NCBI GenBank assembly: GCA_964035545.1 | Contig: OZ037766.1 | Span: 12,266,722-12,330,721 of the forward strand | DNA length: 64,000 nt | Reading direction: 5' to 3' | Origin: Bugula neritina | Lineage: Eukaryota > Animalia > Bryozoa | Shown: positions 1,561-33,941 of the stretch, piece after piece | How positions within the stretch are numbered: position 1 is the stretch's first letter | Layout of the letters: every line of letters begins with the position of its first letter | Program-made: the position numbers and the translations under genes | The notes under the pieces: model-generated | The model's input: the letters and a program-made list of their open reading frames with translations, nothing else | Databases searched by the model: none | What the model was told of the DNA's origin: nothing

Positions 1561-3469
1561 TAGATACTTTATTGTGAACATATGAGATGCAATAATAAGC
1601 GAATATTTGACCATTTGGCACTTCATATACATTTGGCACTTCAAAGTGTAGGCCTATCATGTGTTCATAAAACATAGTATGTGAAAAGCTCTTATTGGAA
1701 ATCTTAAAAATGCAAATATAGTACATAAAACTTTTGTATGAGGTAATTATCTTTAGACCTTAATAGATTATAGGTTATAGATGCCACTGAAGACATTTTT
1801 TTACAAAGAACTTTATAGATCATAGAATAAAAGAATAAAGATAGTATATAATCAAAACCTAGGATAGATTTTCACCAATAAGTAAAACAGCTAAATATCA
1901 TGTTTTGTAAGTCACAAGTGTCTTTTAATAGATAATAGCAAACATATATAAGAAAGCTTGAATATCAAAATTTTGCAGTTTTTCAATTAATATTATTATA
2001 GCTTTAATATTTTTAAATTCGAATCAGCTTATAATTTGCACATTACTATGTTATGCAATTTGAATACAATTTTACAGATAGGATGACACACAGTGGTTCC
2101 TGCAACTTTGTAGCATATATAAATTGTTATGCAATAAGTTTCTCTCTTAGCTCTGCTATTTGTTACTGAACTAGCTCCTGCATCTGAAACTAAAAACAAT
2201 TAGCACTAATTGAAATAGCAAAATGATGAGCAATAAGAAATAGCTACTGGTTGTGCAAATAAATGGCCAGAGGGGCTTCTAATTCCGAAAAGTACAGATA
2301 ATTACCAAAAACTCAAAAAGACCAAAACGTTTTTTCTTGTTGCAATTATGTTTGATTTTTTGAATTACAATGAAAAACTATGACTAAGTAAGTTACCTAA
2401 ATCTTTTGCTGCCATCACAATCATCCATTTATAGCCATTGGTGCACTCATTCTGCACACGTTTAGGAAGGAAACTGACATCCTGTACGAACTCATCAAAT
2501 ACTTTAACATCTACTTCTGCGTCTTCCTCATCCAGTTCCTGGTCATCGAAGTTTTCCAGGAACTCCGACACCACATCTTCGTTGTTGGTTTCACTGAAAG
2601 CAACAGGACTAATATAGCAGCTCTGATTACACGGAGACCCTAAACAGGTTGTATGCATAAATTTCACAGAACTATATACAGTCAATGTATAACATAGAGA
2701 GAAACTGCAATAGTCTACGCACCCATACTAAATCATAATTCGAAGCCTACGTTTATAGTCAACATCAAAGTCGACTTGCATAAATTGAAAAAAATATGTT
2801 AAAGCAAAACAACTATTCATTGATATAATCTAAACAAGTATGATCATATAAGATAAATTATGTAAAATTTATATATGTGTACAGATTTACATATAATGCA
2901 AGCTTATTTCATTTAGTGGATAGCCTATAAGCTACTTCCACTCAGAAATATTCTTATCTTCATACAAGATATACAAGCTGTAACAGACACATATCTACTA
3001 ACACTTTGCGCTATATGTACTATATAACAGACAAGATATTGCATACTATTCAACATATGTATGAGCTGTATCAACTGCCATTTACCTTTTGAAACAATTC
3101 AGCATGAAAAGTACCATCAGCTCGGTGGTAATATGCCACGTGTTCATCTTTGTTCAGCATAACTTGATCCTTCACCTATATTATTTTAAAGCTTTAGCAC
3201 CATTTTCAACATTTTAATATGATATGAAAATGTTAAAAACAATATACCTAAGAATACATGTACAATTAGAATTAAAAAAAATAATATGTATTTATTATTT
3301 GGTAGCCTTTTATCATATATTATCTGATTTTATTTATTACTTCTTTTTCATTTTAAACGCATTTAGTCTAGAAGTAACCAATTCAATGATTTTTCACTCA
3401 TTACGCTCTGAAGGGTGGTCACACAATTTTGTAGAAATTCAGAGTTTTAAGGGTCTTAATTAATCTGTG

Positions 3470-3780
3470 AAAACTCTAGACTGTTCTGTGCACCCAACTG
3501 GCCACAAAAGCTCCTCAAACTTTTGAAATGAATGAAGAGTTGTCTCCTCCTAATTTTTGTCTAAACCAGTTAAATATCCTGGAATTATTAAAACTACTTT
3601 TGTTTATATATATGAAAAAAAATTGCAGATGGCCATAGATGCATTTTTAAGTTTTATTGTACAGACTCTTGACTGTTTTGTCTACCCAGTTAATCACAAA
3701 AGCTCTTCAAACTTTCGAATAAGTTGTTTTTCCCTAATTTTGTATAAATCGGTTAAATATCTTGAAATTATTCAACCTAA
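3470..3780. repeat. Degenerate tandem duplication, ~190-bp period
   Basis: ACTCTAGACTGTTCTGT...CACAAAAGCTCCTCAAACTTT...CCTAATTTT...AAATATC.TG.AATTATT at ~3473 is repeated at ~3665. Confidence 0.65.
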
Positions 3781-4268
3781 AGATTCTAAATATTGTAACT
3801 AATTTTACCAAAAAAAGTAATAAGGAGCATGAACAGGTTAGTCTAGACTCTAGACTCTAGAGGATATTTTAGGTTTGTACAATTGGGCTTTACCAACAAA
3901 TTTAAATATAACTATATATTGTATAAGCAATGTTTTTAAAATGTTGGTTAAAATGCATAATTTTTATGCTATTTTAACGGTGACTTCTGAGTCAAAATTT
4001 AATTAGTTCAGTTATATTTATGAAGGAAATGCCCTAAAGCTTTGCTATAATTGAAAAAATATCATTTTATAATTATGTTTAATTAGCCACCCATTATAGA
4101 AAAAGATCTGGTGGTGTCTTATTCAAAGATCATGGGCAAGTAAGCTTCTTTTATGTGTGTCATGTGTCACAAAAGACAATAATTTCTTACTAGAAAACTA
4201 GGACAAGCTGTTCTAGAATCTAGACTAATTGAACAAATCAGAAAAACTAACATGCAGGTATCATCCTA

Positions 4269-4575
4269 ACCCCTCATTCACACTTACCGTACCGTAGGCT
4301 GTAACAGCAAAATATCAGCCGGTTTTACAAATTTCTGAGCTTCCTTTACGGCGTTGCGGTACATTAGGATCAAGCACTGCTTGATTCAAAAATGCTGCAG
4401 CGGACTTTCATTGGACAGAAAAACTTGTATGTTAACTCATTGGATATAATTATCTAATGAAGTGTCATAGATCGTACCTAATAGCAGACTTTGAAAACTT
4501 CAGCTCGAACACATTACAAATGGCTGATATTTTATGTTACGACCTACGGCATAATGGTAAGTGTGAATGAGAGGT
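4269..4575. mobile_element. MITE with long imperfect TIRs (PIF/Harbinger-like)
   Basis: CTCATTCACACTTACC...CCGTAGG...AAAATATCAGCC at the left end is mirrored by GGCTGATATTTT...CCTACGG...GGTAAGTGTGAATGAG at the right end. Superfamily assignment is tentative. Confidence 0.7.
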
Positions 4576-4899
4576 CAGTCTGAGCAGGTTAGTTATCACA
4601 GACCTAACACATTTAAGCTAAGGGTTACATAGGCATGTGTTGCCATTATAAAAATATCTCTATCCAATTTTAGGCAACATTTTTGCTATCATATCAGAAA
4701 GTATGAAAGAAGCTTAAATGATAGCTATGAAAATAGGAGTCCAAAAAAAATTTCCTCGCCAAATGCATATAAGCATTGTTATAAGTAGTTGACTTATGAT
4801 AAAAATAACTCACAAAATCATGATAACCGCTTCTAATTCCAATAAAATCGCTTTGTACGATTTTAGAGTCCAGTTCTGGTAGGCTCATAACACTTACTT

Positions 4900-6180
4900 A
4901 AAATGTTAAACCTAACCTTGTTGAACTTAATCTTATGAACCTATATGCGCTCCCATGAATTCTATTAAAAAAGAATTGACTGCAGACTGCTATGCTTCAC
5001 ACATTCTCCTGCATGCCTAAAATGTGCTATTATCTTTGATGAAATCGCAAAACTTCAAAAAGTGAAAGCTGTTCCTATACATTTGATATGCATGCTGATA
5101 CATTCCTTACAGAAATAATTGTAACGGCCCATTCCTAATATTCATGCAAAAGAGACTTTTTCTGTAACTTATCTATAGAAACCAGTTTAAGAATATGAAG
5201 AGATCAAGGCATGCTATGATATGTGGTCATGGAACAGCTGTTGTTGGTTCAAATCAATTATTTCTAGCCAGCTTTTGCAATTTCTTGGCAATTAGCAACA
5301 AGAAAAATTATAGTGCATTTTTGTGAAAAACATTGGGCGAAAAAGGCGATAGAGAAATATTTTCATAGCTATTGGGTTCAAGGAAAACTGCATTTAGCTC
5401 AAATTTTCAAAACATGGCAGAGTTCATAAGAAAATGAAAGTATAGTGTGACGAGACACAAGCCTATAAGCATGATCTTACATGCAAAATATGTCCTGAAG
5501 AATGTTCTCTCAATCAAATGTATAATAATAAAGTCACAATATTTGCAATATCTTACCATTTGAAAATGAATGTTCATTCATAGAACATGATATGGTCACA
5601 TGAGATATTTAGATACCAATTTTGCTGCAAATGAACATGGATATGAGTTGTGTGCAACACTCCCTGGCTTTCATACTCTAGCAGGTTATGATTTCATTAG
5701 CACTTGTATAAAAAAGGAAAGTGCACATTCTACTCCTACCTGAGAAAAACATTCAGAATGTGCTGAAAGCTGTTGTACAGCTTGGAAAGTACTTCAAGCC
5801 ACAACTGCAATAATCTAAATAAAAGGACCTTTGCAAATAAGCATAGATGAAGTTTGATGCGCTGTATTCTGTTTTTCTACACCGATGGCTCAATTAGCAG
5901 GTTTCCCCACAACAAAATGAACTTATGCTGCACACAAAATATTTATCAGACAGCCACTTAAAGAAGGGTAACAAATATTCGATTCCAGAATATTTTGGGT
6001 GAAAATTGTTGAGAATGGCAGCATCACTATAAAATGACTAACTCAAATGTGCCCAAAAATGCATTGAAAAAAACATATCATAATGCTGCTGTAAAACCAA
6101 TACATTCTGATGCGAATGTCAGAATTATCAAATGCAGTGCACTGGTGTATGTCAATGCAAGGATTGTTTAAACAGAAGAT
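4900..6180 (+). mobile_element. Decayed Academ-like DNA transposon fragment (XPG/PIN-like + Cys-rich C-terminus)
   Basis: Frameshifted remnants: TLPGFHTLAGYDFIST..KKGK (~5657-5725), PQQNELMLHTK..YQTA (~5907-5957), PEYFG* (~5985), and CCCKT...CECQ..QMQCTGVCQCKDCLN (~6084-6172). Order and content match the XPG + Cys-finger end of Academ-type proteins as recalled; boundaries approximate. Confidence 0.55.
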
Positions 6181-7946
6181 CCTTTGGAGAAAAATACGAA
6201 AATGGAATTAATAGCAGTAATAATAATGGTAACAAAACTTTATACAATGAAGCTCTACTTTGAAACATTTGTTATATAATTTTCTTCAAACAACAAATTT
6301 TACATTATATGCTTTAATAATTAATCATCCCCATATTCTTGTGATTTTATAATACATTTACAGAATCTTGTTCCTATTTTACAGATATTTAGTAATTACA
6401 GCTAGATCAATAAAAGACTCATGTGGTAGGTGCTCAAAAGATCTCAACATGCATCTTTAATATATAGTTTAAACACTTAATTCTTAGATACATCAGCATA
6501 AAAAACTTTCGATCTCACATAACCAGTTTCTTTTATATACTTATTTTGTTATATGCTTCTGCCAAATGTAATGTGCTATTCATATAGCAAACATGTGTCT
6601 CTAGCTGTTGACAGCTTGGTTTTGAATAGAAGGAGTATTTTGCATTTTATATATAAATAAATAAATAATTTTAAAAAAGAAACAACCAATTTTGGTTTCT
6701 CGCCAAATATTGTTGTTTATAGACAGCTAGTTAATATTTTGCATGATCTCCATTCATTTTTATTACCCATTCAAAAAGATGTATGGTTTGCTTTTTGCAA
6801 TAACTTAAGTTTGAGAAAAGATATAATTCCAGAGTTTGTAAATTCAGAATCCTTACAAAATTCTAATCTAGAAATAACTTTTTTTGAGTGGCCACCTAGT
6901 ACAGTGTAATAAGTTAATTTTTTAAAAACTTTTTGGGAGGTTACTTCTAAAGTCTAGATTTATTGAGCTTTTTTCTTTTAAGAGTATTTTATTAAAATGA
7001 TTGTTGCTACTTTCACACTCAAGACCTCTAGCAATGACTGTTGGTGTGTAAGTAGATAGTGCTGACTTATTGTTTATGGATATACAAACCCTGGCCAAAC
7101 ACCTCATAGTAAATTACTTTAAGTCTTTATGCAATAAAATAAATTTATAAAATTACTGCAATACTACTTTAAAAACTATAAAAATGTAGTATCTTCATGA
7201 TGCGTGTGATTTTATATATTACAGAAAAATAATTTTCATGAAAAAATGTATATACAATTCATTTAATTCCTTACACAGCTGCATGAAATAATTCAAATGG
7301 AGATTTTATCTTGAGAGATAATGTGCAGCAAACGATATTTATAGCGTTTATAAATTATTAAAACATCTTAGATAACAAATGCACAAGAGTTTATATATTT
7401 TAAACTCTTTACTCACATGTTGGTTGTCAGGAGTTCTAATGTTAACAGTTGCTTGGACATCTGCACTCACCCTGGTCATCTTCTCAGGCTCTTTGTGCTG
7501 GCAAACTGTATAAGTTTTAGTCAGGCCCATGTAGATAACAGCTGACACAGAAACAACCAACAGAATGGAGATAACCAGCAAGGAGACTCTAAGGAGCTTT
7601 GACTTGTAGCTTTTCTCAACCATTTGTGAACACAAAATTGAATGAATTTCTACTGTACATACCAATTTAACCTAATTATAAGCTGCTACAATGTGTAAAT
7701 CACAATAATATTTTGACTTTAACAATCTATTTTGAAAAAACTTTGCTATAAAATTATTACTTTGTTTAATTTAGTATTTAAAATTTATCAATAGTAACTT
7801 AGTGCAAGTGAAAATTTTGTTGAATGGTTTTTTAATTAAAATTGATATAAGAATATAAGTGTTAGAGAAAGCTTGCCCTAAAGTCTTCGAATGTATGTTT
7901 GTCTGAGGAGCTCATACTAATCTTTATTTTTATATAAGCTGAGAGT

Positions 7947-7982
7947 GAATGATTTTAACTGACATCACTTCAGCCTTTTATA
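7947..7982 (-). promoter_or_regulatory. TATA box + initiator, paralog A
   Basis: ttttata 7976-7982 and gaatga ~7947-7952, homologous to the B and C core promoters. Confidence 0.55.
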
Positions 7983-8392
7983 CTAGCCTGTTCCGCCTGG
8001 GGGTAGAGCTTTGCAATAGTTATGTTGAATATTTGCCAAAAAAAAGCTTGTCTTAGAAAATCAAATAGAAGTATATTCATCAATCCCAAATTAGCAAAGA
8101 TTTTGATTGACCATAAACTAAGTTGGACGTCTAAAAACTGAAATAAATAAATTTTCCCACATTCTTTTTAATGTTTGTAGTAATTATAACTGTTTGTAAA
8201 TGAAATGTTGTGTCTTTATTAGTTTAAGCTGAGAGTTAATTAAAGAGTCCCTGAAACATTTATGCAGTATCAAATTATTCACATACATATTGGCCATCAG
8301 ATAAACACATTTCAGAGTAGTATCCCCAAACATATAGCTTTTAAAAAGTTATTCTTTCGTGGCAGCTCTTGCTGATATGACGTTGTTTGGCT

Positions 8393-8898
8393 CAGTGTTC
8401 TAGGCGGTGTCATCCCAGTTAGACGCTTGCCATGGTTAGACGCTGTTTATTTATATTGGTACAATATATATTTTACGTGCAATTTATTTGGATATCATTT
8501 AAATATATGTATATTAAATAAAGCATGTATTGAGCACATAAATAAACTTCTTTGATCTGAATTAACTTATTAATTTTACATATGTTTTGCTTTTTGTTTG
8601 AACAAATATTTTGTAATTAATGAGTATTCATTAATTAATGATAATGTTTATTATTAATATATTACTGTTTTTTGTCCCACACAAATCTATGAAAACTAGA
8701 ATATTGTTCCAGATAATTCATGTTAGCTATGGTAGCTATTAGCATTTTAGCTATTTAGCAATCAATGCAATGGTTAGATAGGTGTATTACTATATAAGTA
8801 TATAGCACCGAAATAAAAAAACGGTGTCTAACTGGGAAGCATCCAAGTGGGAAATTTAGCCTAGTGTCTAACTGGGATGAATTATTTTATAGGCACTA
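8393..8898. mobile_element. Non-autonomous TIR element with subterminal CCCAGTTAGAC repeats
   Basis: TCATCCCAGTTAGACGCT (8410) is inverted by AGTGTCTAACTGGGATGA (~8863-8880), with extra degenerate copies at both ends; related motifs at ~9887-9995 and ~24230-24340. Confidence 0.5.
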
Positions 8899-11211
8899 TA
8901 GAGCAGAGAATTACCATCATTGCTGATTTTCATTGCTCGCTCTCCTTTGCTTTGCAGAACTTAAATTAATCACTAAGCTGGCTTAAATGTTTAAATGTTT
9001 AAAACACAGGCTATACTACACGCTGCTAAGTAAAAACTCGGAAAACTATCTAAATTGCTACATATGTTAACAGTCAAAGTTAACAATACTTAATATCATT
9101 TCCGTACTTTACAGTGCCTAGATTTTAGATATATTTGACATGATTGAGGAAAACATTTGTAATCATAAATTTTCCAGCCAATAAGGAACTTTTTGTGTGC
9201 CAAAAGATAGTTTTTTTATCTAAATGTCTATTGGCAAATGATGCAACAAATTATTGCAGTTATTTTAAAAAGATCTATTAAATAGTTGAGCTGTAAACTT
9301 TAATAATATTGGCACAATTAAATTTAAAGAGAATATTATCTTGCCAACTGCAATAGATTTTAGACAACTCTTTTGATGTAAAAGAATCTGCTGCTGCAAG
9401 GATATTACAATATATGCATACTCATCCAATAAGGCATTAATGGGAACTGATATCAACCAATGGGAGGGCATTAATATCTTTATTATAGTTTGTTAAGAGT
9501 ATAGTTAGTAGTTTTATAATACATTTTACGCATCAGTCAGCTCTGATGTGTATCTTTCACATCGCAGGCTGCATGGTCTGAATCTACACTCAATCCTAAT
9601 CCATGCTGTTCTTTGCTCTTTGTTCATCAACTTATAGAAAATTTGACTGTGATCAATACCTATATTGTATTTTCATTTGTAAAACATTCATGCTGCTTTC
9701 TTGCAAAATTGCTCTGGTGAAACACTCTTGACATACGTTAAATTGGTAATTATTTAAAGTCAATTTAAAAAGACAATTGTTCTCAAACCAACGTTGTAAT
9801 ATTTGTGTTCGAGGAACTGGTTAGGTGCAAGAAACATTATAATCTAACAATTTATCCCAAATGCAAAGTACCCAAGACAAGGGTTTCATCCCATTTATAG
9901 ACACTTCTCAAATCCCAAACAAGATACATATATCATACCAACAAAAATAAGTAGCTCCATGTGGAAAACCTAGTGTCTACATGGGAAGCGTCTTTCTGAA
10001 ATGGCACCAAAACAAGCAGTGCATTTGCCTTAAGGCTTTTGTGGTTTCATTTGACGCAACTGTTTCCAAACATTGAATGAAAAATTCATTAGCATAATAT
10101 GAGGCTTGGAAACGTAGCGTATTGCAATTTTCAATTTATGAATGTTAAGCTATAGAAATAATATATATTATAATTCACTTTTTTATAAGCGAATGGTACA
10201 AATAATGTTCGCCAAACCGTCAAAATTGAACGGACAATTGAGATCTTCAAAGTAACAGCTCAGACGCATTATTTTTATAATGCGTATACATAATTATATA
10301 ATGCAAAATGAATCTACATATTTAGCCCAAAAACTAGGTTTTGATATATAATGCAACACTTCACAATGTTCTGCTAATAACTGTCATCATGGATACGAAA
10401 GTTACTTTTAAAACATACAGCTACCATTAAAAAATGTAATTTTGTTTCAACTTAATAGTTTTGTTTACTATATTGATAACAGAAAATGATAGGCCTATTC
10501 TTTTTTTACTATATAAAGCATTACATTATAAATATACATTTGTGCAAATCTAGGTCTTATAGCTTCACCTTTTTTTTAAAAGATGCACATTTCTATGGGT
10601 AAGACAATGCAACAGATTTATGAAAATATAAAGCATAACTATTGATGTGACAGATAAGATGTTGCTTTAGCACAATGTATATATATAGCAAATGCACAAA
10701 ACTCTAAAAGAATTTTATTACAAATTGCAGAATGGCTACATAATATAGGCTACATAATATACACTATATTTAATGTCAATTGCCATTACCATACAAACAA
10801 CCAATTTTAATTTTTGTGAGTGCAAACTTCGTATCTTTGAGGAATTTGCCTTGTTGATTATCAATTTTTAGTGCAGAAAGGGCGTGGCATTAAAACACTA
10901 AAACAAGTTATAAACTATTTATTCTCACAATTTGGCATGAGTTGCTTATCCTGAGTGTGCATTCTTTAAAATTGGAAAAGTTAGTTTCCCCTTTTCATAG
11001 CATGATGGAAAACTACTGGCATTGGAAAAACGTTGGAGAAAGTTTCTTTTTATATTTTAGATGTTAATTGCCCTATTTAAATTTTTGTTTGCCAAAATAT
11101 TTTTCAAATTGCCAATGTGCTTCCTTTTCATATTTTTAAAATAATCTTTCTTCTTTGGCAATTACTCAACATAATTATTACAAAACTCTACCCCCAAGTG
11201 AGACAGGCTGG

Positions 11212-11247
11212 TATAAAAAGCTGCAGTTATTTTGGTTAAAATCATTC
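11212..11247 (+). promoter_or_regulatory. TATA box + initiator, paralog B
   Basis: TATAAAA at 11212 and TCATTC (TCAKTY-type Inr) at 11242-11247, ~30 nt apart; arrangement conserved in A and C. Confidence 0.65.
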
Positions 11248-11275
11248 AATCTGAGCTCATAGAATGAAGATTAGT

Positions 11276-13668
11276 ATGAACTCCTCAGACAAACAGACAT
11301 TCGAAGACGTTAAAGCAAGCTTTATTTTTATAATTAAATAATCATCAAATAAAATTTTCATTTAATTACTACCAATTATTTTTAATTACTAATTCAAACA
11401 AAGAAATAATTTTTAGCAAAGCTTTTTTAAGCTAAATTATTCAGGCTAAACTTTTAAATTGCAGTTTACAAAATGTGGCAACTTTTGATTAGGTTGAATT
11501 AAAACTTCCCTCAATTTTGTGTTCACAGATGATTGACAAAAGTGACAAGTCAAAGCTGCTGGGAGTCTCTTTACTGGTTATCTCCATTCTGTTGGTTGTT
11601 TCTGTGTCAGCCGTTATCTACATGGGCCTGAATAAAACTCATGCAGTTTGCCAGCAGAAAGAGCCTGAGAAGATGACCAGAGTGAGCGCGGATGTCCAAG
11701 CAACTGTTAACATTAATACGCCTGACAACCAACATGTGAGTAAAGAGTTTAAAATATATAAACTCTTGTGCATTTGTTATCTAAGAATTTTAAGACATCT
11801 TGATATATCGAAAATGCTATATAAATATTGTTTGCAGCACATTATTTTTCAACTTGAAATTTTTATTTGAATTATTTCAACTAATGTCAGTACATCCACA
11901 TGCAGCTGTAAGTAAAACATGTATATATCATATCCATTTGCTACCTAAAATATTTTGGCAAGTTAAAAGCACCAAAAAATCGTTCAGCTTAAATTATTCC
12001 ACAACTTGAAGTCCAATTTTGTTATACAATATAGCTGAACTAAGAGTATTTCAACTCATGCTAGTATAACTATTTTTCATGATTAAGTTATTTGTTTTGT
12101 AATATGAAACCACACACATGTTTTAAGATATTACACTTTTTTTAACTTTTGAAATGATATTGCAGTGTTTTATATTTGTTTTCTCGCATAAAGATTTGAG
12201 TGATTTGCTGTAAATATTTAGCAAAAATTTTGTAAATATAAGTTGCGAGTATGACTGTTGGTACACATACTATACGATTGATGTTACAGGCTTTGAGTAT
12301 AAAATTAGTAGCCATCATTTGAATTAATATTGCCAAAAGAAAACAGTTAGTAAATATTTAGTTAAAAATTGAAGTTCTACAATCCATGAAATCAGGTATA
12401 ATAATGGTACTGAAATGTAAAAATTTTGGTTTTTGATTTTAATTATACATGTATTATGCGGGAGGTTGCTACTAAAATTTTCATATATAATAAAAATATT
12501 AGAAATGAGACTAATGGTTTAAAAAACTTTGTGTATAATATAGGTGAAGGATCAAGTTATGCTGAACAAAGATGAACACGTGGCATACTACCACCGAGCT
12601 GATGGTACTTTTCATGCTGAATTGTTTCAAAAGGTAAATGGCAGTTGATACAGCTCATACATAATATGGTGTGGTGATTATAGTATGCAATATCTTGCCT
12701 GTTATGTATACAAGTGTAAGTAGATATGTGTCTGGTGCAGCTTGTATATCTTGTACGAACATTTCTGAGTGAAAGTAGCTATAGTGCTATTCTCTAAATA
12801 AAATAAAAGCTTGCATCATACATAAATTTGTACACATATATAAATTCTATATATAATAGGCTATATGTGCTTATGTTTGCTTAGATTATGTCAATGCATA
12901 GTTTTTTGTTTTAAAATCTTTTTGAGCATATGTATGCAAGTCGGATTGGAATTGTGGTATAATATAACCATGCAAAGTATTGTAGTTTCCCTATATGTTA
13001 TATATATTTATATGGTCGGCTATGTATGCATGGTTCTGTGAAATTTATGCATACAACCTGTTTAGGGTCTCCGTGTAATCAGAGCTGATAAAGGCATCTG
13101 CTATATTAGTCCTGTTGCTTTTAATGAAACCAACAATGAAGATGTGGTGTCGGAGTTCCTGGACAACTTCGATGACCAGGAACTGGATGAGGAAGACGCA
13201 GAAGTAGATGTTAAAGTACTCGATGAGTTTGTGCAGGATGTCAGTTTTCTTCCTAAACGTGTGCAGAATGAGTGCACCAATGGGTATAAATGGATGATTG
13301 TGATGCCAACAGGAGATTCTGGTAACTATCTTGTTTAGTTACACTTTCTGTTACAGCTCACCAAAAGTCAAGCATATATTTTGCAGCGAGGTTGAAAGTT
13401 TTAGTCCCTTTTGACTCTTTAGTATAATAACTTGTATTTTTCCACACACAAGTTAAATAATCTATATTTACTTTTTATTTTAATTACTGCTAAATGTAGA
13501 AAAAAAATTTTTTTAATAAGATTGCTTTTTGTTCCAGATGCAGCTGTTACTTCAGCTACCCATGGAAGAGTTAAACGCCGAGTCAGTTGCTACAATCGCT
13601 ACTACTGCTACATCATTTTCAGGAGAGCTTATTGTTATGTACGCCGTATATGTACTATTAGAGGATAA
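11276..13668 (+). CDS. BRICHOS-domain precursor of a cationic beta-hairpin antimicrobial-type peptide, paralog B (intact, ~240 aa)
   Basis: Exons 11276-11314 (MNSSDKQTFEDVK, GC donor; in-frame upstream ATG at 11264), 11529-11735 (hydrophobic LLGVSLLVISILLVVSVSAVIYMGL), 12544-12633 (VKDQVMLNKDEHVAYYHRADGTFHAELFQK), 13066-13321 (GLRVIRADKGICYISP...FLPKRVQNECTNGYKWM), 13538-13668 (DAAVTSATHG-RVKR-RVSCYNRYYCYIIFRRAYCYVRRICTIRG*). Phases 0,0,0,1 join without stops; introns 2-4 are GT-AG. CYI and C-x5-W motifs match the BRICHOS cysteine pair (pattern recognition, no HMM run). Confidence 0.85.
13579..13665 (+). other. Predicted mature peptide B, 29 aa, C-x5-C-x8-C-x5-C, 7 Arg, C-terminal Gly
   Basis: Follows the RVKR furin consensus and ends at the stop; no acidic residues; symmetric Cys spacing fits a two-disulfide beta-hairpin. 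Confidence 0.75.
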
Positions 13669-15048
13669 GCCAAAAGTCTTTTAATATTGCTTAAGATTGC
13701 TGTGAGTTCATATGAAATTATGATTTGTGTTTAAAAGTATGGCAAGCTACAAAATTATGATTAGAACTTTCTCTATTTTGAACTTCAGCTTTGTTATAGT
13801 GTGCTTTATCTATTGCAAAAAAAGCATTATGATATTTTCCTGTTTTGCTTATTGGTGAAAATTTAGCCTTATGTTGACTGTACCATTTTTATGCATTTTA
13901 TTTAATAATAAAGTTTTCAAAAAATAACCATAAATAATGGCATCTTTGATATGATTCATTAAAGTAGTCGAAAAAGAATATTTCTCTTACAACATTTTGA
14001 ATTTTCTTTTTAAAAGTTTCTAATAAAATTACTTTTTTCTATCCTGATGGCCTTTATGAATTCATAAATATACTGCATTAGCTATAAAATAGCATTTGGG
14101 ATTTTGAACCTGAGTTCCCAAGTATAAACTTATAATTAATAAACTGGTTTACACATCACCCCCAACAACATTCACCTGCATACTTTAACTGTCACATTTA
14201 CTCATAGAATATCCCTATTTATGATGAAGTGGAATTGTTAGATTATAAGTTGTGGCTGTTTTGATTTATGTACATTGTGTTTACATTGGGTATGTGGCTA
14301 TCTGAATATAAATGACGTGGTGTCATTCCTACCCAACCTCTACTATTTTTCTACTCTAGGGCTATGTAGTGAATGGCTTAAAGCACTATAATAGTAATTT
14401 GAACAACATTTTAGAGTATTTATCTATTTTGCCTAACACAGTCATGCAAAGGATTGAAATTGTCACACTTTGTTACTACATAACTTAGCTGGCCACATCG
14501 AATGTTCCCACTGAACAATAACTCCTTTGATACCAGTTCTTAATTAATTATATTTTGGAAAAATGTAACAGCAATAACTAATAAGTAACTACTTCAGATT
14601 AACTAAACAAGTTCAACTAACGGAGAACACATTACTACTTGTACAAAATTATTATATAACTATGAAATAACTAGCAAAACAATATAAAATGAAAATTGGT
14701 TATAAAAAACTAGATAACTAGAAAGCAACACAAATTAACTGACTCTGTTACTTTTTTGCTAACATATTTTTTGTGCCTGTAAATGTGATAAATGTTATTA
14801 TGTTATTAAGTTATTATGCAGTTTATAGTAATATATTAAACTTTTCACCAGTTTTACTATAATCTTTCGAGTTACACATACACAAATTATTAACTCAATT
14901 ACGATTATTACTTAATTGCATTATTGTTGTTATTTTGTTATTACAGTCTACTATAAATAATATTATGCTATGTCTCTACGCAGCATAAATTATACTCTGC
15001 AAAAAATCTTAAGCTGGCTTAGAGAAGGTCAACTCTACACCCAATTTT

Positions 15049-15360
15049 AGGTATAAATGTCACAGGTAAACATGGCACAGGTAAACATGGCACAAGTAAA
15101 CATTGCACAGGTAAACATGGCACAGGTAAAAATGGCACAGTGAAAATGGCACAGGTAATAATGGCACAGGTGACAATGGCGCAAATTGAAAAGTAGGTAA
15201 ATATGGCATGCTAATGTTAAATTTTTCAACTCCTCAAACTCCAAACCTAAACCCTTCACCCTAAATCCCCAAGCCCCCACCTCAAACCCCAATATTGAAG
15301 ATGGGCCACTTTTACCCACCTTTCCGTTTGTACCATTGTTACCTGTGCCATTTGGACACT
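15049..15360. repeat. 15-bp tandem repeat (CACAGGTAAACATGG) with inverted copies; probable non-autonomous DNA element
   Basis: About 9 units at 15050-15210, a C-rich CCTAAACCC tract, then inverted units GTACCATTGTTACCTGTGCCAT at 15330-15351. Confidence 0.7.
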
Positions 15361-15699
15361 CTGCACCAAGTTCTACTTCGCAAATGTTTGCTTACAATTT
15401 GAGCCTAAAAGACACACGAAACAGCTATAGTGCATGATCAGTATGCTTTATTTGGACGTTATTAACTGAATGTGCTTTGGAGTTTCCCTTAGCTCACCTC
15501 AGCTTTAACAGCCTGCATGAACACCTTGACCTTAGAAATTACCAGGAGTTGCTGTATAACAGAATAATTAGATCACTATACTAGTGGAACAGAACAATAA
15601 CACCAACTAATCTCCCAAATTTAATCGCAGCACTTCAAAAGCATAGTTTTCAAATACAATTAGACATATGTAAATTTTTTAAACACTGTTGAACATGTG

Positions 15700-16800
15700 G
15701 GTCATACCATTAACAATTAGGAATAGGAAATGCCCAACAAATTCTTTTCTGGCGGCTCTCTTTAAACTACCCAGAATCCTAGACTTCCATTGTTGCAATG
15801 GTTGTTTCATTACCAATGTTGTGTGTCTGCTATGATCCCATCATCTCCAATATGTTGGTGTGTCGTCTCCAATTCCGAAGATAAAACTGCTCTGCTGTAT
15901 AATTTCCTCACCAGTGATATTTTGTTTACAAAGTCAGAAAAATTTGAACAAACCTTTACCTAGCTATATAGAACAGCATCACCAAGCCACTAGCCTAGCA
16001 CACTATACCCAAACACAATAATTCATCTTATGGAGTAGGAGTTGTGCTGTCATAAGTGATTGATCAAGAAGAACTCCCATATTGAGTTGGCCAGAAAATC
16101 TTATAAAGTGTGCACCCAATTTCTTGTTGTACTATTAGCTTATTAACTTAACAGGTCCAGACTAGAATTCTACACTTAGAAGCAGTAGTGGAGAAATTGA
16201 GACAGCCTAAGCTATTTAATTCTATTATTAATTTTTGATTTGGAGCTCGAGTTAAAATTTTTGCAAAAATCTAACTTCTTTTGCTAAATTTTTAATCTAG
16301 AACACAGGCTTTTTTCAATTTCTCTATTGATGCAATCAGCTCGAATTTTAAGTCCCCAGCTGTTCACCTGTACATTCATTTGACAGCTACTCCCAAGCAT
16401 TTCATCTGTACCGAAAGCCGTATGTCATAACTATATCGCATCAGATCCATAATCCTACAATTGAAACTCACACATGTAGATTTTCTTTGACTCTTCAGTA
16501 GTAAGGTGTAGCTTTTCTGTACTGATTGTTCAAATTTCTCATGATTTACAGGATAGGCAAATAATTAATAGCAAACAATGCAAGTATTGAAGGGCATCTG
16601 TACTATTGAGGCTGTATGTGCAACTTTTCTTACAGGTCATTACCCACATTTTTCAGTCAGGAATTTGCTAGTTTATGCAATACTTTCTACTTGAAATGTG
16701 TTGCTTCAACCTCCTAGTGACTTTTTTATAACTTTCAAAAGCTCTGTAAACAAGAATTGTGAAAGATGAGCACTTTTAGACAATAGTATTATATCGTCAT
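15700..16800 (-). mobile_element. Possible heavily decayed hAT (BED-finger) transposase remnant in the inverted-repeat spacer
   Basis: Broken minus-strand fragments such as VMTCKKSCTYSLNSTDALQYLH (BED-like), KSTCVSFNCRIM and IIADTQHW; many stops, weak resemblance only. Confidence 0.3.
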
Positions 16801-17936
16801 CAGCATATTACCTAACCATTCCACATCTATTTTTGCAGTGGAAAATACCTGCAGAGGTCTTGGATGGCAACTGATTGTGAAGATATAACTCTCCAGTTTA
16901 CAAACAAACTGCCAAAGAAGACAAGCTATAAACAGGTTATTGACCCATTAGTGTATGCTGCAACTATAGTTCTGGTTCAATATAGATTCCAGCAAATTTT
17001 TATCCAAACAAGAAAATATGATGTTACATTTTTCCAAAATATATTTAATTAAGAACTGGTATCAAAGGGGTTATTGTTCAGTGGGAACATTCGATGTGGC
17101 CAGATAAGTTATGTAGTAACAAAGTGTGACAATTTCAATCCTTTGCATGGCTGTGTTAGGCAAAATAGATAAATACTCTAAAATGTTGTTCAAATTACTA
17201 TTATAGTGCTTTAAGCCATTCACTGCATAGCCCTAGAGTAGAAAAATAGTAGAGGTAAGGTAGGAATGGCACCACCTCATTTATATTCAGATAGCCACAT
17301 ACCCAATGTAAACACAAGGTGTATAAATCACAGCAGCCACAACTTATAAGTTAACAATTCTACTTCAACATAAATAGGAATATTCTATGTGTAAATGTAA
17401 GAGTGAAAGTATACAACAGAACAAATAGGGGATCAAGTGTAAACTCTTTTGTAAATTATAAGTCTATACTTGGGATCTCATGTTAAAAAACCAAAGTGCT
17501 ACTATGGCTAATGCGCAGTACAATTATAAATTCATTTAAAGACAATGAGTTATAATAAATTTATTTTATTATAAACTTTTAAAAGGAAAACTCAATATAA
17601 AGAATTTCATAAAAGAAAAGGTATTTTTCAATCAGTTTAATTTATTATACTACAGATGCCATTATTTATGGTTATATTTTTGACAATTTTATGATTAAAT
17701 AAAATTTGTAAATATTATATAATTAAATTAGGCTAAGTTTTTACCAAAAACAAAAACAGCAAAATATAATGTTTAATAACTCACAAACTTCTTTCAATAG
17801 ATTATATTAAGCAGATTATAACAAAGGTGAAGCTCAAAACAAAGCAATTTGTAATTATAATTATGGTTTGTCATATTTTTCAACGCAAATTTTAATTTTA
17901 TGAAAGCAATGTTTGCATGTAACTTACTGAAAGACA

Positions 17937-20900
17937 TTACACACAAATGCGATATATATAACAATAAATTTCTTCGTCAAAAGGATAGCATCGATAGTAA
18001 TAGTAATAGGAACAAATAACTTGGCGTTTGGCTCTTCCATGTGAAGCTAAAGTGACATCTGCATCTGAAATAAAAACAACTATAGTAACAAATTTTCTTT
18101 TAGATTTAGCTGTGTAATTAAAAAAACCTAATAAATTATATATATCATTTTTGTTTGTTTTTGTGCTTTGCTAATCAGAAAAATCCATCATTAGAAGAGT
18201 GTCAAAAGTATGAAACCAATTTTCATTGTAAGTATGTTTAACTTTTGTGAACTGTAACAGAAAGCTCTAGCTAAGCAAGATAGTTACCAGAATCTCCTGT
18301 TGACATCACAATCATCCATTTATAGCCATTGGTGCACTCATTCTGCACACGTTTAGGAAGGAAACTGACATCCTGCACAAACTCATCGAGTACTTTAACA
18401 TCTACTTCTGCGTCTTCCTCCTCTATTTCCTGGTCACCAAAGTTGTCCAGAAACTCCGACACCACATCTTCGTTGTTGGTTTCATTGAAAGCAACAGGAC
18501 TAATATAGCAGATGCCTTTATCAGCTCTGATTACACGGAGACCCTAAATAATTTGTATATGCATAAATTTCACAGAACCATGCATATACAGCCGACCATA
18601 TAAATATATATAACATATAGTGAAACTACAATACTTTGCATGGTCGTATTATGCCACAATTCTAATCCGACTTGCATACATATGCTCAAAAAGATTTTAA
18701 AGCAAAAAACTATGCATTGACATAATCTAAGCAAACATAAGCACATATACTATATTATGGTAAATTTATATATGTTTACAAATTTATGTATGATGCAAGC
18801 TTTTATTTTATTTATAGAATAGCACTAGCTACTTTCACTCAGAAATATTCGTACATGATACACAAGCTGTAACAGACACATATCTACTTACACTTGTATA
18901 CATAACAGGCAAGATGTTGCATACTATTCACCACACCATATTATATATGAGCTGTATCAACTGCCATTTACCTTTTGAAACAATTCAGCATGAAAAGTAC
19001 CATCAGCTCGGTGGTAGTATGCCACGTGTTCATCTTTGTTCAGCATAACCTGATCCTTCACCTATATTATACACAAAGTCTTGTTAACCATTAGCCCCAT
19101 TTCTAATATTTTTATTATACATAAACTTTTAAAAATAACATTGCTATAAATTCATATGATATGATATGAAAATGTTAAAAACAATATACCTATACATTTC
19201 TAATATTTTTAATATATTATATGAAAATTTTAGTAGCAACCTCCCACATAATACATGTATAATTAAAATAAAACACCTTAAAATTTTTACATTTCCGTAC
19301 CAATATTATACCTGATTTCATAGATTGTAGAATCTCAACTTTCAACTAAATATTTACTAACTTTTTCTTTTGGCAACATTACTTCAAATAATGGCTACTA
19401 ATTTTATACTCAAAGCCTGTAACATCAATCTATTAGTATGTTTACCAACAGTCATACTGGCAACTTATATATAGATATACAGAATTTTTGCTAAATATTT
19501 ACAGCAAATCACTCAAATCTTTATGCAAGAAATCGAATATAAAACACTGCAATATCATTTCAAAAGTTAAAAAAGTGTAATATCTTAAAACATGTGTGTG
19601 GTTTTATATTACAAAACAAATAACTTAATCATAAAAAATAGTTATACTGGCATGAGTTGAAATACTCTTAATTCAGCTATATTGTATAATGAAATTAGAT
19701 TTCAAGTTGTGGAATAATTTAAGCTGAACGATTTTTTGGTGCTTTTAACTTGCTAAAACATTTTAGGTAGCAAATGGACATGATCATATACATGTTTTAC
19801 TTACAGCTGCATGTGGATGTACTGGCATTAGTTAAAATAAGTCAAATAAAAATTTCAGGTTGAAAAATAATGTGCTGCAAACAATGTTTATATACATGTA
19901 GCATTTTCGATTTATCAAAATATCTTTAAATTCTTAGATAACAAATGCACAAGAGTTTATATATTTTAAACTCTTTACTCACATGTTGGTTGTCAGGAGT
20001 TCTAATGTTAACAGTTGCTTGGATATCTGCACTCACTCTGGTCGTCTTCTCAGGTTCTTTGTGCTGGCAAACTGCATGAGTTTTAGTCAGGCCCATGTAG
20101 ATAACAGCTGACACAGAAACAACCAACAGAATGGAGATAACCAGCAAGGAGACTCCTAGCAGCTTTGACTTGTCGCTTTTCTCAACCATCTGTGTAAAGT
20201 CATCACATATGACATAGCATAATTATTTCAAGTTGTAAAAGCAGCATAACGTAATGAATGTACTACAGTTTATATACCAGGTTGTCAGCATTTTAAACTG
20301 TTGAGAACCTGGTTGTGGTGTGAAGATACCATTATTACTGCAGTCTATATGCAGTACAGAGTGTAATCTATTTATGGTACAACCAACTTCCACAATTATT
20401 TCATAGCATACCTTTCCACTCAAATAGGCTATCCGCATCGCTTGATTCCTGCCTACAGCCTACGCAACGACTGCTAGTTGTCAATTCATTAATTAGATAA
20501 CAGCACGCCCTCGCCCATTGGCTGTGGCTTTACGCTTTGGCAGCCCGGATGTTCAGTGCAGACGTTGAACCTACAGCTAGTAGAATAGTAGGCGCTAGCA
20601 ATGCAAGTTCCATCGCATCAATAACAATCAATTTTAATGATATAATTAACAAAATATAATTGAATTTGAATTTGAATTAACTTAAAGAGGCTCAGGTTAG
20701 TTTTGTTTTTCAGTATTTGTAATAGTTTGAAGCTTTCCTTAAGTATTTTTTGATCTATTTCAACTTAATAATAAATATTTGGTTTATTTAACATGTTTAG
20801 AAGTTTAACAAGTTTGGAATGCCAGTGTGGTCAGTGCATGATAGAATTCATGGCTATGTGTTTACTCTATAGTAATATATTTCTCATAAAATTACAAATT

Positions 20901-21677
20901 CTTAAGGCAGGTTTTCCAGTTATTGATCAGTTTGTCACAGGATAGTACCCTAATTTGTAGGTAGCTTAAAGTTTTACTTTTACTCATAACAGTATTTTAC
21001 TGCAACTACTAATTCAAGTCAACTTTGAATACAAGTTTAATCTTTGTTTATGTGATTTATGCACTATTATAACTTGTCTTAACCAATATAATTACTTAAC
21101 TTTGTCTATGGCAATTATCATTTAATGTCATTTTATTATAAACTTTAATATTTTTAGTAAACCTACAATGTCATTTCCTAGAGTCAAACTCACCCTAGCT
21201 AGCCACTAAAAGAAGGCAAGAGGTGACTAATCCAAAATATGTATATATGTTTGAATACTTTACAACGACATAAATAATATTTTGTTGGTTTTATTTTAAA
21301 AACCTATTGTAATTGCATATATCAACCTACTTTTACAGTTTCTTACGGCAGTTGGAATAAGTAAAAATAAAGTTACTAACACCAACACCAGTACAACTCA
21401 TCTAAAGTTAGTGGCAACGCTACAATCTGCGAACACAAAATTGAATGAATTTCTAATGTACATGATAATTCAACCTAATCAAAAGTTGCCACGTTTTGTA
21501 AACTGCAATTTCAAAGTTTGGCCTAAATAATTTAGCTTAAAAAACTTTGCTAAAAATTATTACTTTGTTTGAATCGGTAGTACCATAATTAAATTAAAAC
21601 TTTATTTGATGATTTTCAATTATAAAGAAGAAGCTTGCCTTAACGTCTTCGAATGTGTGTTTGTCTGAAGAGCTCAT
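17937..21677 (-). CDS. BRICHOS-domain peptide precursor, paralog C (coding exons intact, ~239 aa; solo LTR at the exon-2 acceptor)
   Basis: Exons 21677-21639 (MSSSDKHTFEDVK, AAG|gcaagc), 20189-19983, 19061-18972, 18543-18288, 18064-17937 (DADVTLASHG-RAKR-QVICSYYYYYRCYPFDEEIYCYIYRICV*). Exons 1-4 have the same lengths as in B (39, 207, 90, 256 nt) and the same phases. Confidence 0.8.
17940..18023 (-). other. Predicted mature peptide C, 28 aa, C-x7-C-x8-C-x5-C, Tyr-rich, net -1
   Basis: Follows RAKR; QVICSYYYYYRCYPFDEEIYCYIYRICV then TAA at 17939-17937. Confidence 0.7.
20193..21424. mobile_element. Solo LTR (1232 bp, 5-bp TSD, BEL/Pao- or Copia-like)
   Basis: Ends TGTA...TACA, flanked by ATCTG (20188-20192 and 21425-21429); absent from paralogs A and B. 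Confidence 0.8.
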
Positions 21678-21705
21678 ACTAATCTTCATTCTATGAGTTG
21701 AGATT

Positions 21706-21741
21706 GAATGATTTCAACGGAAATAACTGCAGCCTTTTATA
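21706..21741 (-). promoter_or_regulatory. TATA box + initiator, paralog C
   Basis: TATAAAA (plus strand ttttata 21735-21741) and TCATTC (gaatga 21706-21711) upstream of exon 1. Confidence 0.6.
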
Positions 21742-21780
21742 CCAGCCTGTCTCACTTGGGGGTACACAGTTAGTTTAAGG

Positions 21781-28621: not shown

Positions 28622-29153
28622 CTAAAAATGTGAATAAAATAAAATTACATGACACACATGAAGTTGGCAGCACCAGATGCAGTAGGAGTATTCAGATCAA
28701 AAGAGCAAGCTGTTAGACAATTAAAATGGTAAACATGGCAACTTTGGGAGCAAATTTAAAAAAAGTCACACATAGCTTTTTATATCAGTTAAGCAAGCAT
28801 ACATTTTTACAATGAAGAACATCTGCACTACATTACATGAACACCCGGGATAGCTGCAATCTACAATACACTGTAATTACAACATGCAAGATGCAACTCA
28901 TAAAATCAATAATCGAGACATGCAACTAAACAAGAGAATGCTGGGGATTTCAGCCTAACCTTTTTGCTGCAAATATTGTACATGCGTTGAGAGCACATCT
29001 ACCAACTACAAACCACAAAAGCTACAACAATGGGTTGAAAAAAAGAAACTGAAAAAGGCAAGCGGCGACAAACAAAAATGTCTCAAGCCAAAAGCAACTA
29101 CAGCCTCACAAGCCAACTAACAATTAGACCAGCCACAACATTGACAAAAGTAC

Positions 29154-32100: not shown

Positions 32101-33941
32101 TGATGGCAGGTGCACTGTTTCTACCCTACTAACTTCACTACTGGCATCGCCAATATTCTGAGAAAAGCTGTCAGAAAATACTTCATCTGAAACACTAGTT
32201 GAAGCAGTAGGCACAGAACTATCGCTAGAATCATGTGTGCTCTTACTGCTTGGCAATATGTCAGTCAACTCTCCAGTTTCCAAGACATAGCACGCGCCTA
32301 TCACACTAGTTTCTGCTGAAGAACATGGAGTTTCATTCAACTCATCCGTAACCGTTTTTGAACTTACGAAGGATGTTTCCAAAACATCACCAGCATCATC
32401 ACTTTCTACATCTGAAAAACTTAGCCTGCGTTCTCCTTCGGAAGAGATACCGGAAAAGCCCCCAAAAGACAATCGACCATGTGCTGAATTAAAACTAGGG
32501 CACAAAGTGGCATCACTAGGTGGTAACCCTGCAGCTTGTTTTACATCTGATGAAATATCCTTTTCAGAATTACACAGCGTATCACAGCCACCACCACAAT
32601 CTTTAGCATCTTCACCAGAACTTCCAAAATCATACGAGGTGCCACTATCTGTCATTATTTGTGGAGATGGAAAAATATCCTGTTTTTCAGTTATACTAGA
32701 ATCTTCTCCGGATGAAAGCTCTTGATCTGATAACATGACTTTGTCAGATGCAGTTTCTGCATCTAAATTAGCAGCACCTAATGACTCCTTTTCTCCACAA
32801 GTCAGCAAAGGATCAGCTGAAGGTGCTGAAATTTCGGCCTGCTTAGCAACAATGCCATCTGTAGAACTACTTCTTGATTGGGAAATGCTTTCTCCAACTT
32901 TAAACACTTCGTTTGAATTAGAATGTTGCTCCTCGTTTGATGCAAGTTCAAAATCTTCGTTTGCGGCTTGAGAGTGTATACTCATCAATGCATCATTAAC
33001 TAGACTTCTAGCTAGTTCATAGATGCTGTTGTCGGCGCTGGTAGGAGATTCAACAGGTAATCTATCTTCTTTAGAAGATATAGCTGCAGAAGAATTATCA
33101 TCAGGTAATAATATATCTCCATCAGCTTCAGAATTGCTTTCTATAGAACTTGAACACTCTAAGTGATGAGCCTTTTCATTTTTGTGTGAGATATCTTCAG
33201 ATGAGGACATCCCATCTGCTACCATACTACGACTAAAATCTTCTGAACCTGGCAAGTCACCCAAATCTTCTAACGGCTTTAGTTTTTCTGCATCGTGAGT
33301 ACTGTCCTCAGTACAATCATCAGTTTGCATGTCCTCATTTTCTTTGTCCGGCAAGAAAGTATTATCCTTAGCTAGACTGGACTCACCACTAACTTGATCA
33401 TCAGATAAAAATGAATCAATTTTTTCAGCAGCACGCAAATTTTCATAAAGTTGATCTAGTGAACTGTTTTTGTCATCAGAAAGAGTAGGTGTGAGTGATT
33501 TATCATCTTGGCTTAAATCCAAAAGCTCACTATGCTTTCCAAGTGATGGATTATCGACATCACCCTCTAATTTACCAGATTGTTCATTTTCTAACGAGCC
33601 TTGCACTTTATCCATTAGTTTTCCAATATAATTGTCAGCTTGATCATCAATAATGTTGAAATCTGGAATTTCTGAATCTTTGTCAACATCCTCAATTGAA
33701 TATATTGTTGATGGCCTAGATAAGTCATCGTATGAGCGATAGGTCTGTGCTGAGTCGGAGCTATTGCTAGTAGTTTTAGGTAATTTTCCAATACAAGCTC
33801 CTTGGACATCACAAACTGTTTTAGGAACTATTAAATCATGGTCAATGACGTCATGTTCGTTCGGACTAGCAGACAAAGTGTGATCACCAGAGGAGCTCAG
33901 CAATGTGCCACCACCAACCTCACAAGCATCAACACCAATAC
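29154..33941 (-). CDS. 4788-nt exon of the giant gene; acidic Ser-rich region with UNC-44L-like SSLxEFExLE and MxxSxDSL repeats
   Basis: Within ORF 29098..33996; acceptor atgcag|GT at 33941, donor GAAG|gtactt at 29154; length divisible by 3. Confidence 0.85.
31420..32045 (-). repeat. Three tandem ~70-aa coding repeats (FTYDPSELDKSPID..LSVRFT.DGN.PAS)
   Basis: Period ~210-213 nt inside the 4.8-kb exon. Confidence 0.85.

Follow-up and report, generated by a model that had tools for sequence, protein, structure and literature searches.

The 64,000-nucleotide stretch of the Bugula neritina genome considered here (positions 12,266,722 to 12,330,721 of contig OZ037766.1, C2 below, in an assembly of 216 Mb; hereafter the window) contains three members of a cluster of five paralogous genes, each predicted to encode a membrane-anchored precursor with a BRICHOS-like luminal domain and a short, cysteine-rich C-terminal peptide, referred to as the cargo. 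The cluster occupies ~31 kb. Copies A, B and C lie within the window, which is AT-rich (~30% GC up to 42 kb), and copies D and E are located 2.4-11.5 kb to its left. The three paralogs counted in the initial annotation are thus all present in the window, but the total is five, D and E having been found by a genome-wide search with exon 4. A and B are arranged head-to-head, and B and C are inverted relative to each other and meet tail-to-tail. A pattern scan for cargo exons across 104 kb returned exactly five, with no orphan cargo exon in the region scanned. The features are as follows, those of A, B and C being taken from the listing of open reading frames (ORFs), self-BLAST and alignments and those of D and E from a six-frame genome search with exon 4; Cys spacings are the numbers of residues between successive Cys.

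Copy A, 2029-7927, minus strand
7883-7983, minus: promoter and degenerate exon 1, the first ATG changed to ATA and the donor GT to TT
7417-7623, minus: exon 2, the acceptor before it changed from CAG to CAA
3086-3175, minus: exon 3, preceded by an intron 2 grown to 4.2 kb
2397-2639, minus: exon 4, lacking 13 nt between 2620 and 2621
2029-2183, minus: exon 5, R-A-K-R and a 37-residue cargo (2142-2032; net charge +3, Cys 5/8/3, a fifth Cys)
Copy B, 11211-13668, plus strand
11211-11308, plus: promoter and exon 1 (TATA box 11211-11218, initiator (Inr)-like ATCATTCA at 11241, 15 codons at 11264-11308, donor GTTAAA)
11529-11735, plus: exon 2, 69 codons, phase 0/0 (basic N terminus, 25-residue transmembrane anchor, luminal linker)
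12544-12633, plus: exon 3, 30 codons, where the BRICHOS-like domain begins with its first strands; Watersipora has a collinear exon 3, also of 30 codons
13066-13321, plus: exon 4, BRICHOS-like core (two conserved Cys, N-E-T sequon, acidic insert, net charge -13), ending in phase 1
13538-13668, plus: exon 5, propeptide tail, R-V-K-R, 29-residue cargo and stop
13579-13665, plus: cargo, identical to that of E (net charge +7, six Tyr, C-x5-C-x8-C-x5-C, C-terminal Gly)
Copy C, 17937-21742, minus strand
21645-21742, minus: promoter and exon 1 (TATA box at 21742, coding 21689-21645, donor GTTAAG)
19983-20189, minus: exon 2, transmembrane anchor
18972-19061, minus: exon 3
18288-18543, minus: exon 4, BRICHOS-like core (Pfam PF04089, E 0.0063)
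17937-18064, minus: exon 5, R-A-K-R and a 28-residue cargo (18023-17940; net charge -1, nine Tyr, Cys 7/8/5)
Copy D, approximately C2:12,255,257-12,257,609 (exons 2-5), minus strand: 28-residue cargo, net charge -2, Cys 6/8/3
Copy E, approximately C2:12,262,195-12,264,309 (exons 2-5), minus strand: cargo as in B

The predicted gene structure is the same throughout. Exon 1 provides 15 codons before a phase-0 donor (GTTAAG, or GTTAAA in B) and is preceded by a TATA box and the Inr-like element; these two elements, the exon-1 donor and the exon-2 acceptor are all kept in four of the five copies, and the promoter and exon-1 region of B as a whole has a conserved counterpart in every copy. Exon 2 (69 codons) opens with an ATG placed directly after the acceptor AG and encodes a basic N terminus followed by an uncharged hydrophobic stretch of 25 residues, which in B aligns with the transmembrane helix of the Watersipora subatra homologue P0004 (residues 15-49 in its model). 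Exon 3 contributes 30 codons and exon 4 a further 85 plus one base, while exon 5 completes an Asp codon and adds 12 propeptide residues ending in R-x-K-R, the cargo and a stop. The five-exon model, with junctions placed by conserved signals and by annotation in Watersipora, is supported: according to NCBI, the W. subatra gene for XP_067942708.1 also has five exons with phases 0,0,0,1, a TATA box and a 9-codon, phase-0 exon 1, and its exon boundaries fall at the same aligned residues as those of the cluster, including the exon 3/4 junction. A dibasic, furin-type site directly precedes the C-terminal peptide in all five copies, as R-A-K-R in A and C and R-V-K-R in B, D and E, and in each a Cys-rich tail then runs to the stop, as initially described.

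That these are genuine paralogues, and not chance resemblances, follows from intragenomic exon-4 matches at E 1e-40 to 1e-53. In a public DNA run, which may share its sample with the assembly, k-mer depth is ~128x on unique pieces and 395x on a contig with paralogue-type bases over exon 4, and a contig covering 7740-8010 in the region of A (~128x) shows no differences; both observations fit several real genomic copies.

The closest relatives of the cluster are proteins of W. subatra. A phmmer search with exon 4 against 1.8 billion representative proteins gave 16 matches, two of which are full-length Watersipora proteins of 250-252 residues with the same order of parts; in exon 4 the similarity amounts to 34% identity at E 1e-8, the value also found for B exon 4 against P0004. 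Two other matches, P0005 (annotated 'saposin') and P0015 (from Biomphalaria), aligned over the acidic stretch only and were set aside. No annelid precursor was among the 16, and no direct comparison with annelid precursors was made. A word-indexed protein search with exon 4 returned no matches, and such searches with P0004 and the family alignment retrieved only Watersipora proteins and short genomic fragments, with no spliced protein of B. neritina. XP_067942708.1, XP_067947259.1 and their paralogues share with the cluster the five exons, their phases and the TATA promoter, together with the order of transmembrane anchor, domain, K-R site and aromatic four-Cys cargo, several of these cargos likewise ending in Gly; they differ in having cargos of at least 46 residues with other Cys spacings. 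The Watersipora proteins are annotated as uncharacterized and carry no Pfam domain on record, which is why the family was missed by automatic annotation. Since the nearest relatives are bryozoan, the earlier suggestion that a host other than an annelid would carry this system into another phylum holds.

Two tandem paralogues 6 kb apart on Watersipora OY755164.1 (L016:1-3612 and 10001-13710) encode cargos that are 89% identical, and hypervariability of the cargo is therefore not uniform across the family. Within B. neritina itself, a genome profile search recovered ~14 exon-4-like exons in five places, the last four of which hold the distant paralogue loci L007-L011:

C2, 12.26-12.29 Mb: five exons
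C2:29415684-29424598 (29.42 Mb): two exons
C3:22516676-22523018 (22.52 Mb): two exons
C6:10969493-11015652 (10.97-11.02 Mb): four exons
C9:7900534-7900792 (7.90 Mb): one exon, broken

These distant paralogues resemble the Watersipora proteins more closely than the cluster copies do. At L010, a short ORF downstream of the exon-4-like exon encodes Q-K-R and then a tail with eight Cys, which may represent another type of cargo.

Exons 2-4, the scaffold of the precursor, were initially described as almost identical between copies, and this is borne out at the protein level, where A, B and C are 87-91% identical over exon 2 and 85-95% over exon 4 and do not differ in exon 3 (100%); for exons 2, 3 and 4 of all five copies the ranges are 87-97%, 97-100% and 80-99%. 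Leaving out the identical E/B pair, the five copies share 38-69% of the propeptide tail and 5-36% of non-Cys cargo positions. Scaffold rates of synonymous (dS) and nonsynonymous (dN) substitution are 0.12-0.24 and 0.02-0.08, with dN/dS between 0.16 and 0.45 and a synonymous excess in each of the four pairs examined (Fisher p 2e-3 to 6e-6), from which we conclude that the scaffold is under purifying selection. In the cargo dN rises to 0.5-0.95 and synonymous sites are saturated, so that dN/dS above 1 could not be established there. The proportion of nonsynonymous differences (pN) in the cargo, 0.37-0.54, can nevertheless be set against 0.21-0.31 in intron 3 and the 3' flank (p 0.007 to 3e-5), and the proposal of a diversifying cargo is upheld by this excess over flanking non-coding divergence.

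Nucleotide identity between B and C is 94% in introns 1-2 and 96% in exon 4. At the end of that exon it steps down, intron 3 standing at 80%, the propeptide tail at 82%, the cargo at 71% and the 3' flank at 79%. This drop suggests that the 5' module, up to the end of exon 4, has been homogenised by gene conversion or recent duplication, and that the 3' module is older, its cargo apparently changing faster still than the neighbouring non-coding DNA. The two copies also form an inverted repeat (B 12473-14500 against C 19131-17092; ~2 kb per arm, 83% identity over an aligned 2.1 kb) around a unique spacer of ~2.6 kb, a geometry that favours conversion between the arms.

Homogenisation of this kind is one ingredient of a reading in which the window copies are decaying, unexpressed duplicates that owe their apparent constraint to recent duplication and gene conversion, and which we consider very improbable. 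The condition of copy A speaks for it. Four lesions are present there, namely the loss of the start codon, of the exon-1 donor and of the exon-2 acceptor and the 13-nt deletion in exon 4, the last of which shifts the frame; splicing to a downstream AG at 2622 would avoid the shift at the cost of the first 10 residues. Scaffold dN/dS is high in most comparisons involving A (0.28-0.45), and this copy is probably a pseudogene. Its intron 2 (3176-7416) measures 4.2 kb compared with 0.6-0.9 kb in the other copies and holds high-copy repeats, as short stretches of it reach ~9500x k-mer depth in the public run.

Copy C has been altered by a 1230-bp insertion in intron 1 (20195-21424, minus strand), which begins with TG, ends with CA, abuts the exon-2 acceptor and is bordered on both sides by a 5-bp target-site duplication, CAGAT. 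With at least 40 further genomic matches of 82-91% identity to its first ~1020 bases, some of them paired ~3.2 kb apart, it belongs to a dispersed repeat family that resembles long terminal repeats (LTRs), and itself looks like a solo LTR. The AG adjoining exon 2 was kept, and its pyrimidine tract was lost. Beyond the lesions in A and the repeat at the acceptor in C, the weaker GTTAAA donor of B and the lack of an RNA run in the public-run search also fit decay. Against this, B, D and E look intact in their open frames, splice sites and promoters, and C keeps all three as well; dN/dS is well under 1 in every pair; the family and its introns are conserved in two bryozoans, with at least 14 exon-4-like copies in five places of the B. 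neritina genome; and the cargo retains its four Cys and the position of its stop despite near-saturated divergence.

To assess the luminal domain, the exons were searched singly, and full-length Watersipora homologues were used as proxies for folding. PF04089, the Pfam BRICHOS profile, came first when exon 4 of each window copy was searched (E 0.006-0.008, 17 bits, profile positions 22-86 of 91; E 0.007 for B) and is the commonest Pfam match in the family, being found in 6 of 25 members with a best E of 4.6e-4, still below the cut-off. For residues 58-190 of P0004, features of the ESM protein language model placed gastrokine, ITM2 and proSP-C as the top named clusters (0.90, 0.87 and 0.87), all of them BRICHOS, and the ten best all belonged to the BRICHOS family or clan. 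A shape search of the ESM Atlas with a Watersipora homologue brought chondromodulin, SP-C and the related OAF family to the top at TM-scores of 0.43-0.47. The BRICHOS fold consists of a beta-sheet with a helix on either side. AlphaFold models were made of full-length P0004 (predicted local distance difference test (pLDDT) 65-90 in the domain) and of residues 55-192 of P0009 (mean pLDDT 78, predicted TM-score 0.71). Both recovered the BRICHOS structure 2YAD among the best PDB matches; for the P0009 model, the top 17 Foldseek matches included 2YAD (probability 0.96, TMt 0.56) together with 8OVI, 8OX2 and 8RNU. With VIA-align, 2YAD gave Z 5.0 and a root mean square deviation of 3.0 A over 67 of 79 residues, and BRICHOS chains in general Z 4.8-5.0.

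The surroundings of the domain are also of BRICHOS type, comprising the exon-2 transmembrane anchor, a luminal N-x-T sequon and a C-terminal cargo with an abundance of Tyr, Ile and Cys. Throughout the bryozoan family two Cys are kept, one in the motif I-C-Y-I and the other in E-C-T-N-G-Y, and the window copies share with Watersipora an Asp that precedes the first of them by 21-24 residues; these are candidates for the two Cys and the Asp that BRICHOS domains conserve. The net charge of exon 4, -11 to -14, makes this an acidic proregion, like that of nicomicin precursors (PMC6265681).

Several results count against the BRICHOS assignment. Every PF04089 match lies under the gathering score (17 vs 25 bits); full-length P0004 and P0009 gave no BRICHOS match at E <= 1; the locus went unflagged when the genome was scanned in six frames with PF04089; the family profile run against PDB sequences found no BRICHOS chain, only chance matches at E 0.3 or worse; and the language-model features of window exon 4 alone pointed to RsmB-type fragments (0.88) on the basis of just 134 features in common, no more than chance level for a partial domain. 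In VIA-align, BRICHOS ties with LolA, LolB and ependymin (Z 5-6) and is not separable from LolA, ependymin or polo-box-like folds. It can accordingly be argued that the domain adopts another fold of beta-sheet plus helix, LolA-, LolB- or ependymin-like and possibly lipid-binding, whose likeness to BRICHOS is convergent. The best VIA-align rows (LolB, LolA and EPDR1, Z 5.2-6.0) do stand slightly above the BRICHOS chains, and the sub-cut-off Pfam scores point the same way. We regard this as improbable: the Z gaps, under ~1.2, amount to ties or near-ties, and BRICHOS chains are aligned over 85% of their length with the top sequence identity of the listed rows (18-19%). Pfam, language-model features, Atlas shape and the PDB are four kinds of test, and BRICHOS is the one family to turn up in all of them; the two Cys, type II topology, furin site and C-terminal peptide, too, are what is seen in BRICHOS proproteins, ITM2B for example. 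None of the tests decides the matter by itself, and sub-threshold Pfam scores, language-model features and fold matches are each weak alone, but they converge, and the luminal domain is very probably a divergent BRICHOS, as originally claimed.

In the cargo, the only constants are four Cys and an inner C-x8-C loop. The Cys frame was initially said to be kept with a C-x5-C-x8-C-x5-C spacing, and this is accurate for B, and hence E, and for the inner loop of all copies, but the outer arms vary between 3 and 7 residues elsewhere and A has an additional Cys. The B/E peptide is rich in Arg, Tyr, Ile and Val, and when its sequence is read for hairpin register both putative Cys pairs give i+j=29, the register of a regular hairpin, which two putative disulfides would close. 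An association between domain and cargo was modelled for P0004, whose domain and own cargo scored 0.47 compared with 0.24 for the best of three controls, which is weak support. The mark applied to such predictions is passed by 51 of the 78 solved complexes used for comparison and by 2 of the 108 mismatched pairs; in the range of 0.60 and below, only 5 of those 78 pass it, along with all 4 of the passing mismatches. Between runs 79% or more of the contacts agreed, and partner pLDDT was at least 53.

From these elements a pathway can be proposed. Each gene would give rise to a proprotein of ~240 residues, a type II membrane protein in which a short basic cytosolic N terminus is followed by one transmembrane anchor, a luminal divergent BRICHOS-like domain with an acidic insert (net charge about -12), a short linker, R-x-K-R and a Tyr/Ile-rich, four-Cys cargo of 28-37 residues. 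The BRICHOS-like domain would keep the beta-prone cargo soluble in the secretory pathway until a proprotein convertase cut after R-x-K-R, releasing a hairpin stapled by two disulfides, with the C-terminal Gly of the B/E peptide presumably converted to an amide. On the strength of its composition, the most likely role of this +7 peptide is in host defence, as a membrane-active peptide of the arenicin type. We consider it probable overall that the locus represents a bryozoan multigene cluster of membrane-anchored BRICHOS-like precursors with a diversifying four-Cys cargo, serving arenicin-type defence in the case of B and E.

A number of further points weigh on the other side. Lesions affect two of the three window copies (four in A, the insertion at the acceptor in C); the search of public runs for the stretch yielded one DNA data set and no RNA run; and the protein collections searched contained no transcript-derived protein of this species. 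The regular-hairpin Cys register occurs only in B and E, and of the four distinct cargos only that of B and E is strongly cationic, A being weakly so (+3) and C and D anionic. Part of the contrast between scaffold and cargo is explained by an older 3' module combined with conversion of the 5' module.

The charge of the cargos leads to a further alternative, in which architecture and processing are the same and the products are not antimicrobial, acting instead as deterrents or toxins against predators and settlers, as signals, or as Tyr-rich structural, adhesive or cross-linking (possibly amyloid-like) parts of the cuticle. What the family has in common is a high content of aromatic residues and Tyr, together with four Cys, and not charge, as illustrated by C with nine Tyr in 28 residues at -1 and by D at -2; the Watersipora cargos are rich in Tyr, Trp and His and are not clearly cationic; a single acidic scaffold bears both cationic and anionic cargo; and a constant precursor with a hypervariable mature region is the pattern of toxin families too. 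We nevertheless find this rather unlikely, because the B/E cargo, with its +7 charge, two putative disulfides and C-terminal Gly, matches the composition of the annelid BRICHOS hairpin antimicrobial peptides (AMPs), and nothing indicates a venom or gland context. An acidic proregion with a cationic cargo is moreover typical of AMP precursors (PMC6265681).

The preferred interpretation, a defensive cluster, can be extended to a system of carrier and exchangeable cargo, in which a scaffold homogenised by conversion launches cationic and charge-reversed hairpins that act together. We think this quite unlikely. If true, the opposite charges might reflect neutralising or heteromeric partners, or a graded set for managing bacterial symbionts and surface microbiota; a role in controlling epibionts has reportedly been proposed for alvinellacin. 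BRICHOS-coupled peptide defence would then be an ancestral lophotrochozoan trait and not an annelid speciality.

Elsewhere in the window, between 41796 and 63998 on the minus strand, a single open frame of more than 7400 residues, made up of ~790 copies of a 24-nt unit, encodes acidic 8-residue repeats of the type E-E-P-D-Q-T-V-A and runs off the end of the window, with 52% GC and a strong AT skew. Further long minus-strand ORFs lie at 40563-41600, 36007-37020 and 29098-33996, and the upstream Ser/Asp/Glu-rich ORFs may be part of the same giant gene as the repeat frame.

A bryozoan family with its gene structure kept in two species would widen the taxonomic range of BRICHOS-coupled biosynthesis and would supply new disulfide-hairpin candidates, in particular the +7, probably amidated peptide of 28 residues. 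A single chaperone scaffold with cargos of opposite charge would also bear on how BRICHOS domains recognize their clients. A full-text search of the literature found no paper linking BRICHOS precursors to Bryozoa, only an unrelated review being matched, and one for B. neritina together with antimicrobial peptides gave nothing on topic among the matches listed.

Among known systems, Bri2 (ITM2B) of vertebrates is a type II transmembrane protein whose luminal part holds a BRICHOS domain and from which furin cuts a short, disulfide-closed C-terminal peptide. The bryozoan precursors share this layout, to which proSP-C may also be likened, and an 'Integral membrane protein 2' cluster appears at 0.87 in the language-model search. 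The vertebrate proproteins differ in their conserved cargo and in having no diversifying cluster, and their sequences show no significant match; orthology with ITM2 is also hard to reconcile with a multicopy, lineage-specific cluster whose cargo is hypervariable. In the precursors of toxins and of amphibian skin peptides, a conserved precursor and a retained Cys framework are combined with residues between the Cys that change fast, and they resemble the cluster in this pairing of a constant prepro region with a hypervariable mature region, although their folds and carriers are unrelated and lack BRICHOS.

The nearest parallels are found in the marine annelids, from which alone BRICHOS-coupled peptide precursors have so far been described in reviews up to 2026 (PMC10745061, PMC13001179). 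The precursors of arenicin, alvinellacin, capitellacin, nicomicin and HfBRI likewise form multigene families; they start with an N-terminal anchor or signal, carry BRICHOS within a proregion that is acidic, and end, after a dibasic or furin site, in a Cys-stabilised, beta-prone C-terminal peptide. The layout of transmembrane anchor, BRICHOS, furin site and hairpin that the initial annotation ascribed to the annelid precursors is supported in the cluster, but most annelid AMP precursors carry signal peptides and only some, the five HfBRI, are anchored in the membrane like the bryozoan copies (PMC10745061). Apart from the phylum, the cargo is what sets Bugula apart, at 28-37 residues compared with 20-22 in arenicins, alvinellacin and capitellacin (PMC13001179), with its C-x8-C inner loop, outer arms of 3-7 residues and, in some copies, a net negative charge. 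The preproalvinellacin family too comprises tandem paralogues of BRICHOS plus cargo shaped by duplication and recombination, but in that family it is BRICHOS that diversifies, around a conserved peptide (Papot et al. 2017, PMC5431198). The bryozoan cluster, with its conserved scaffold and diversifying peptide, does the reverse, and its pattern of selection is the mirror image of the alvinellacin case.

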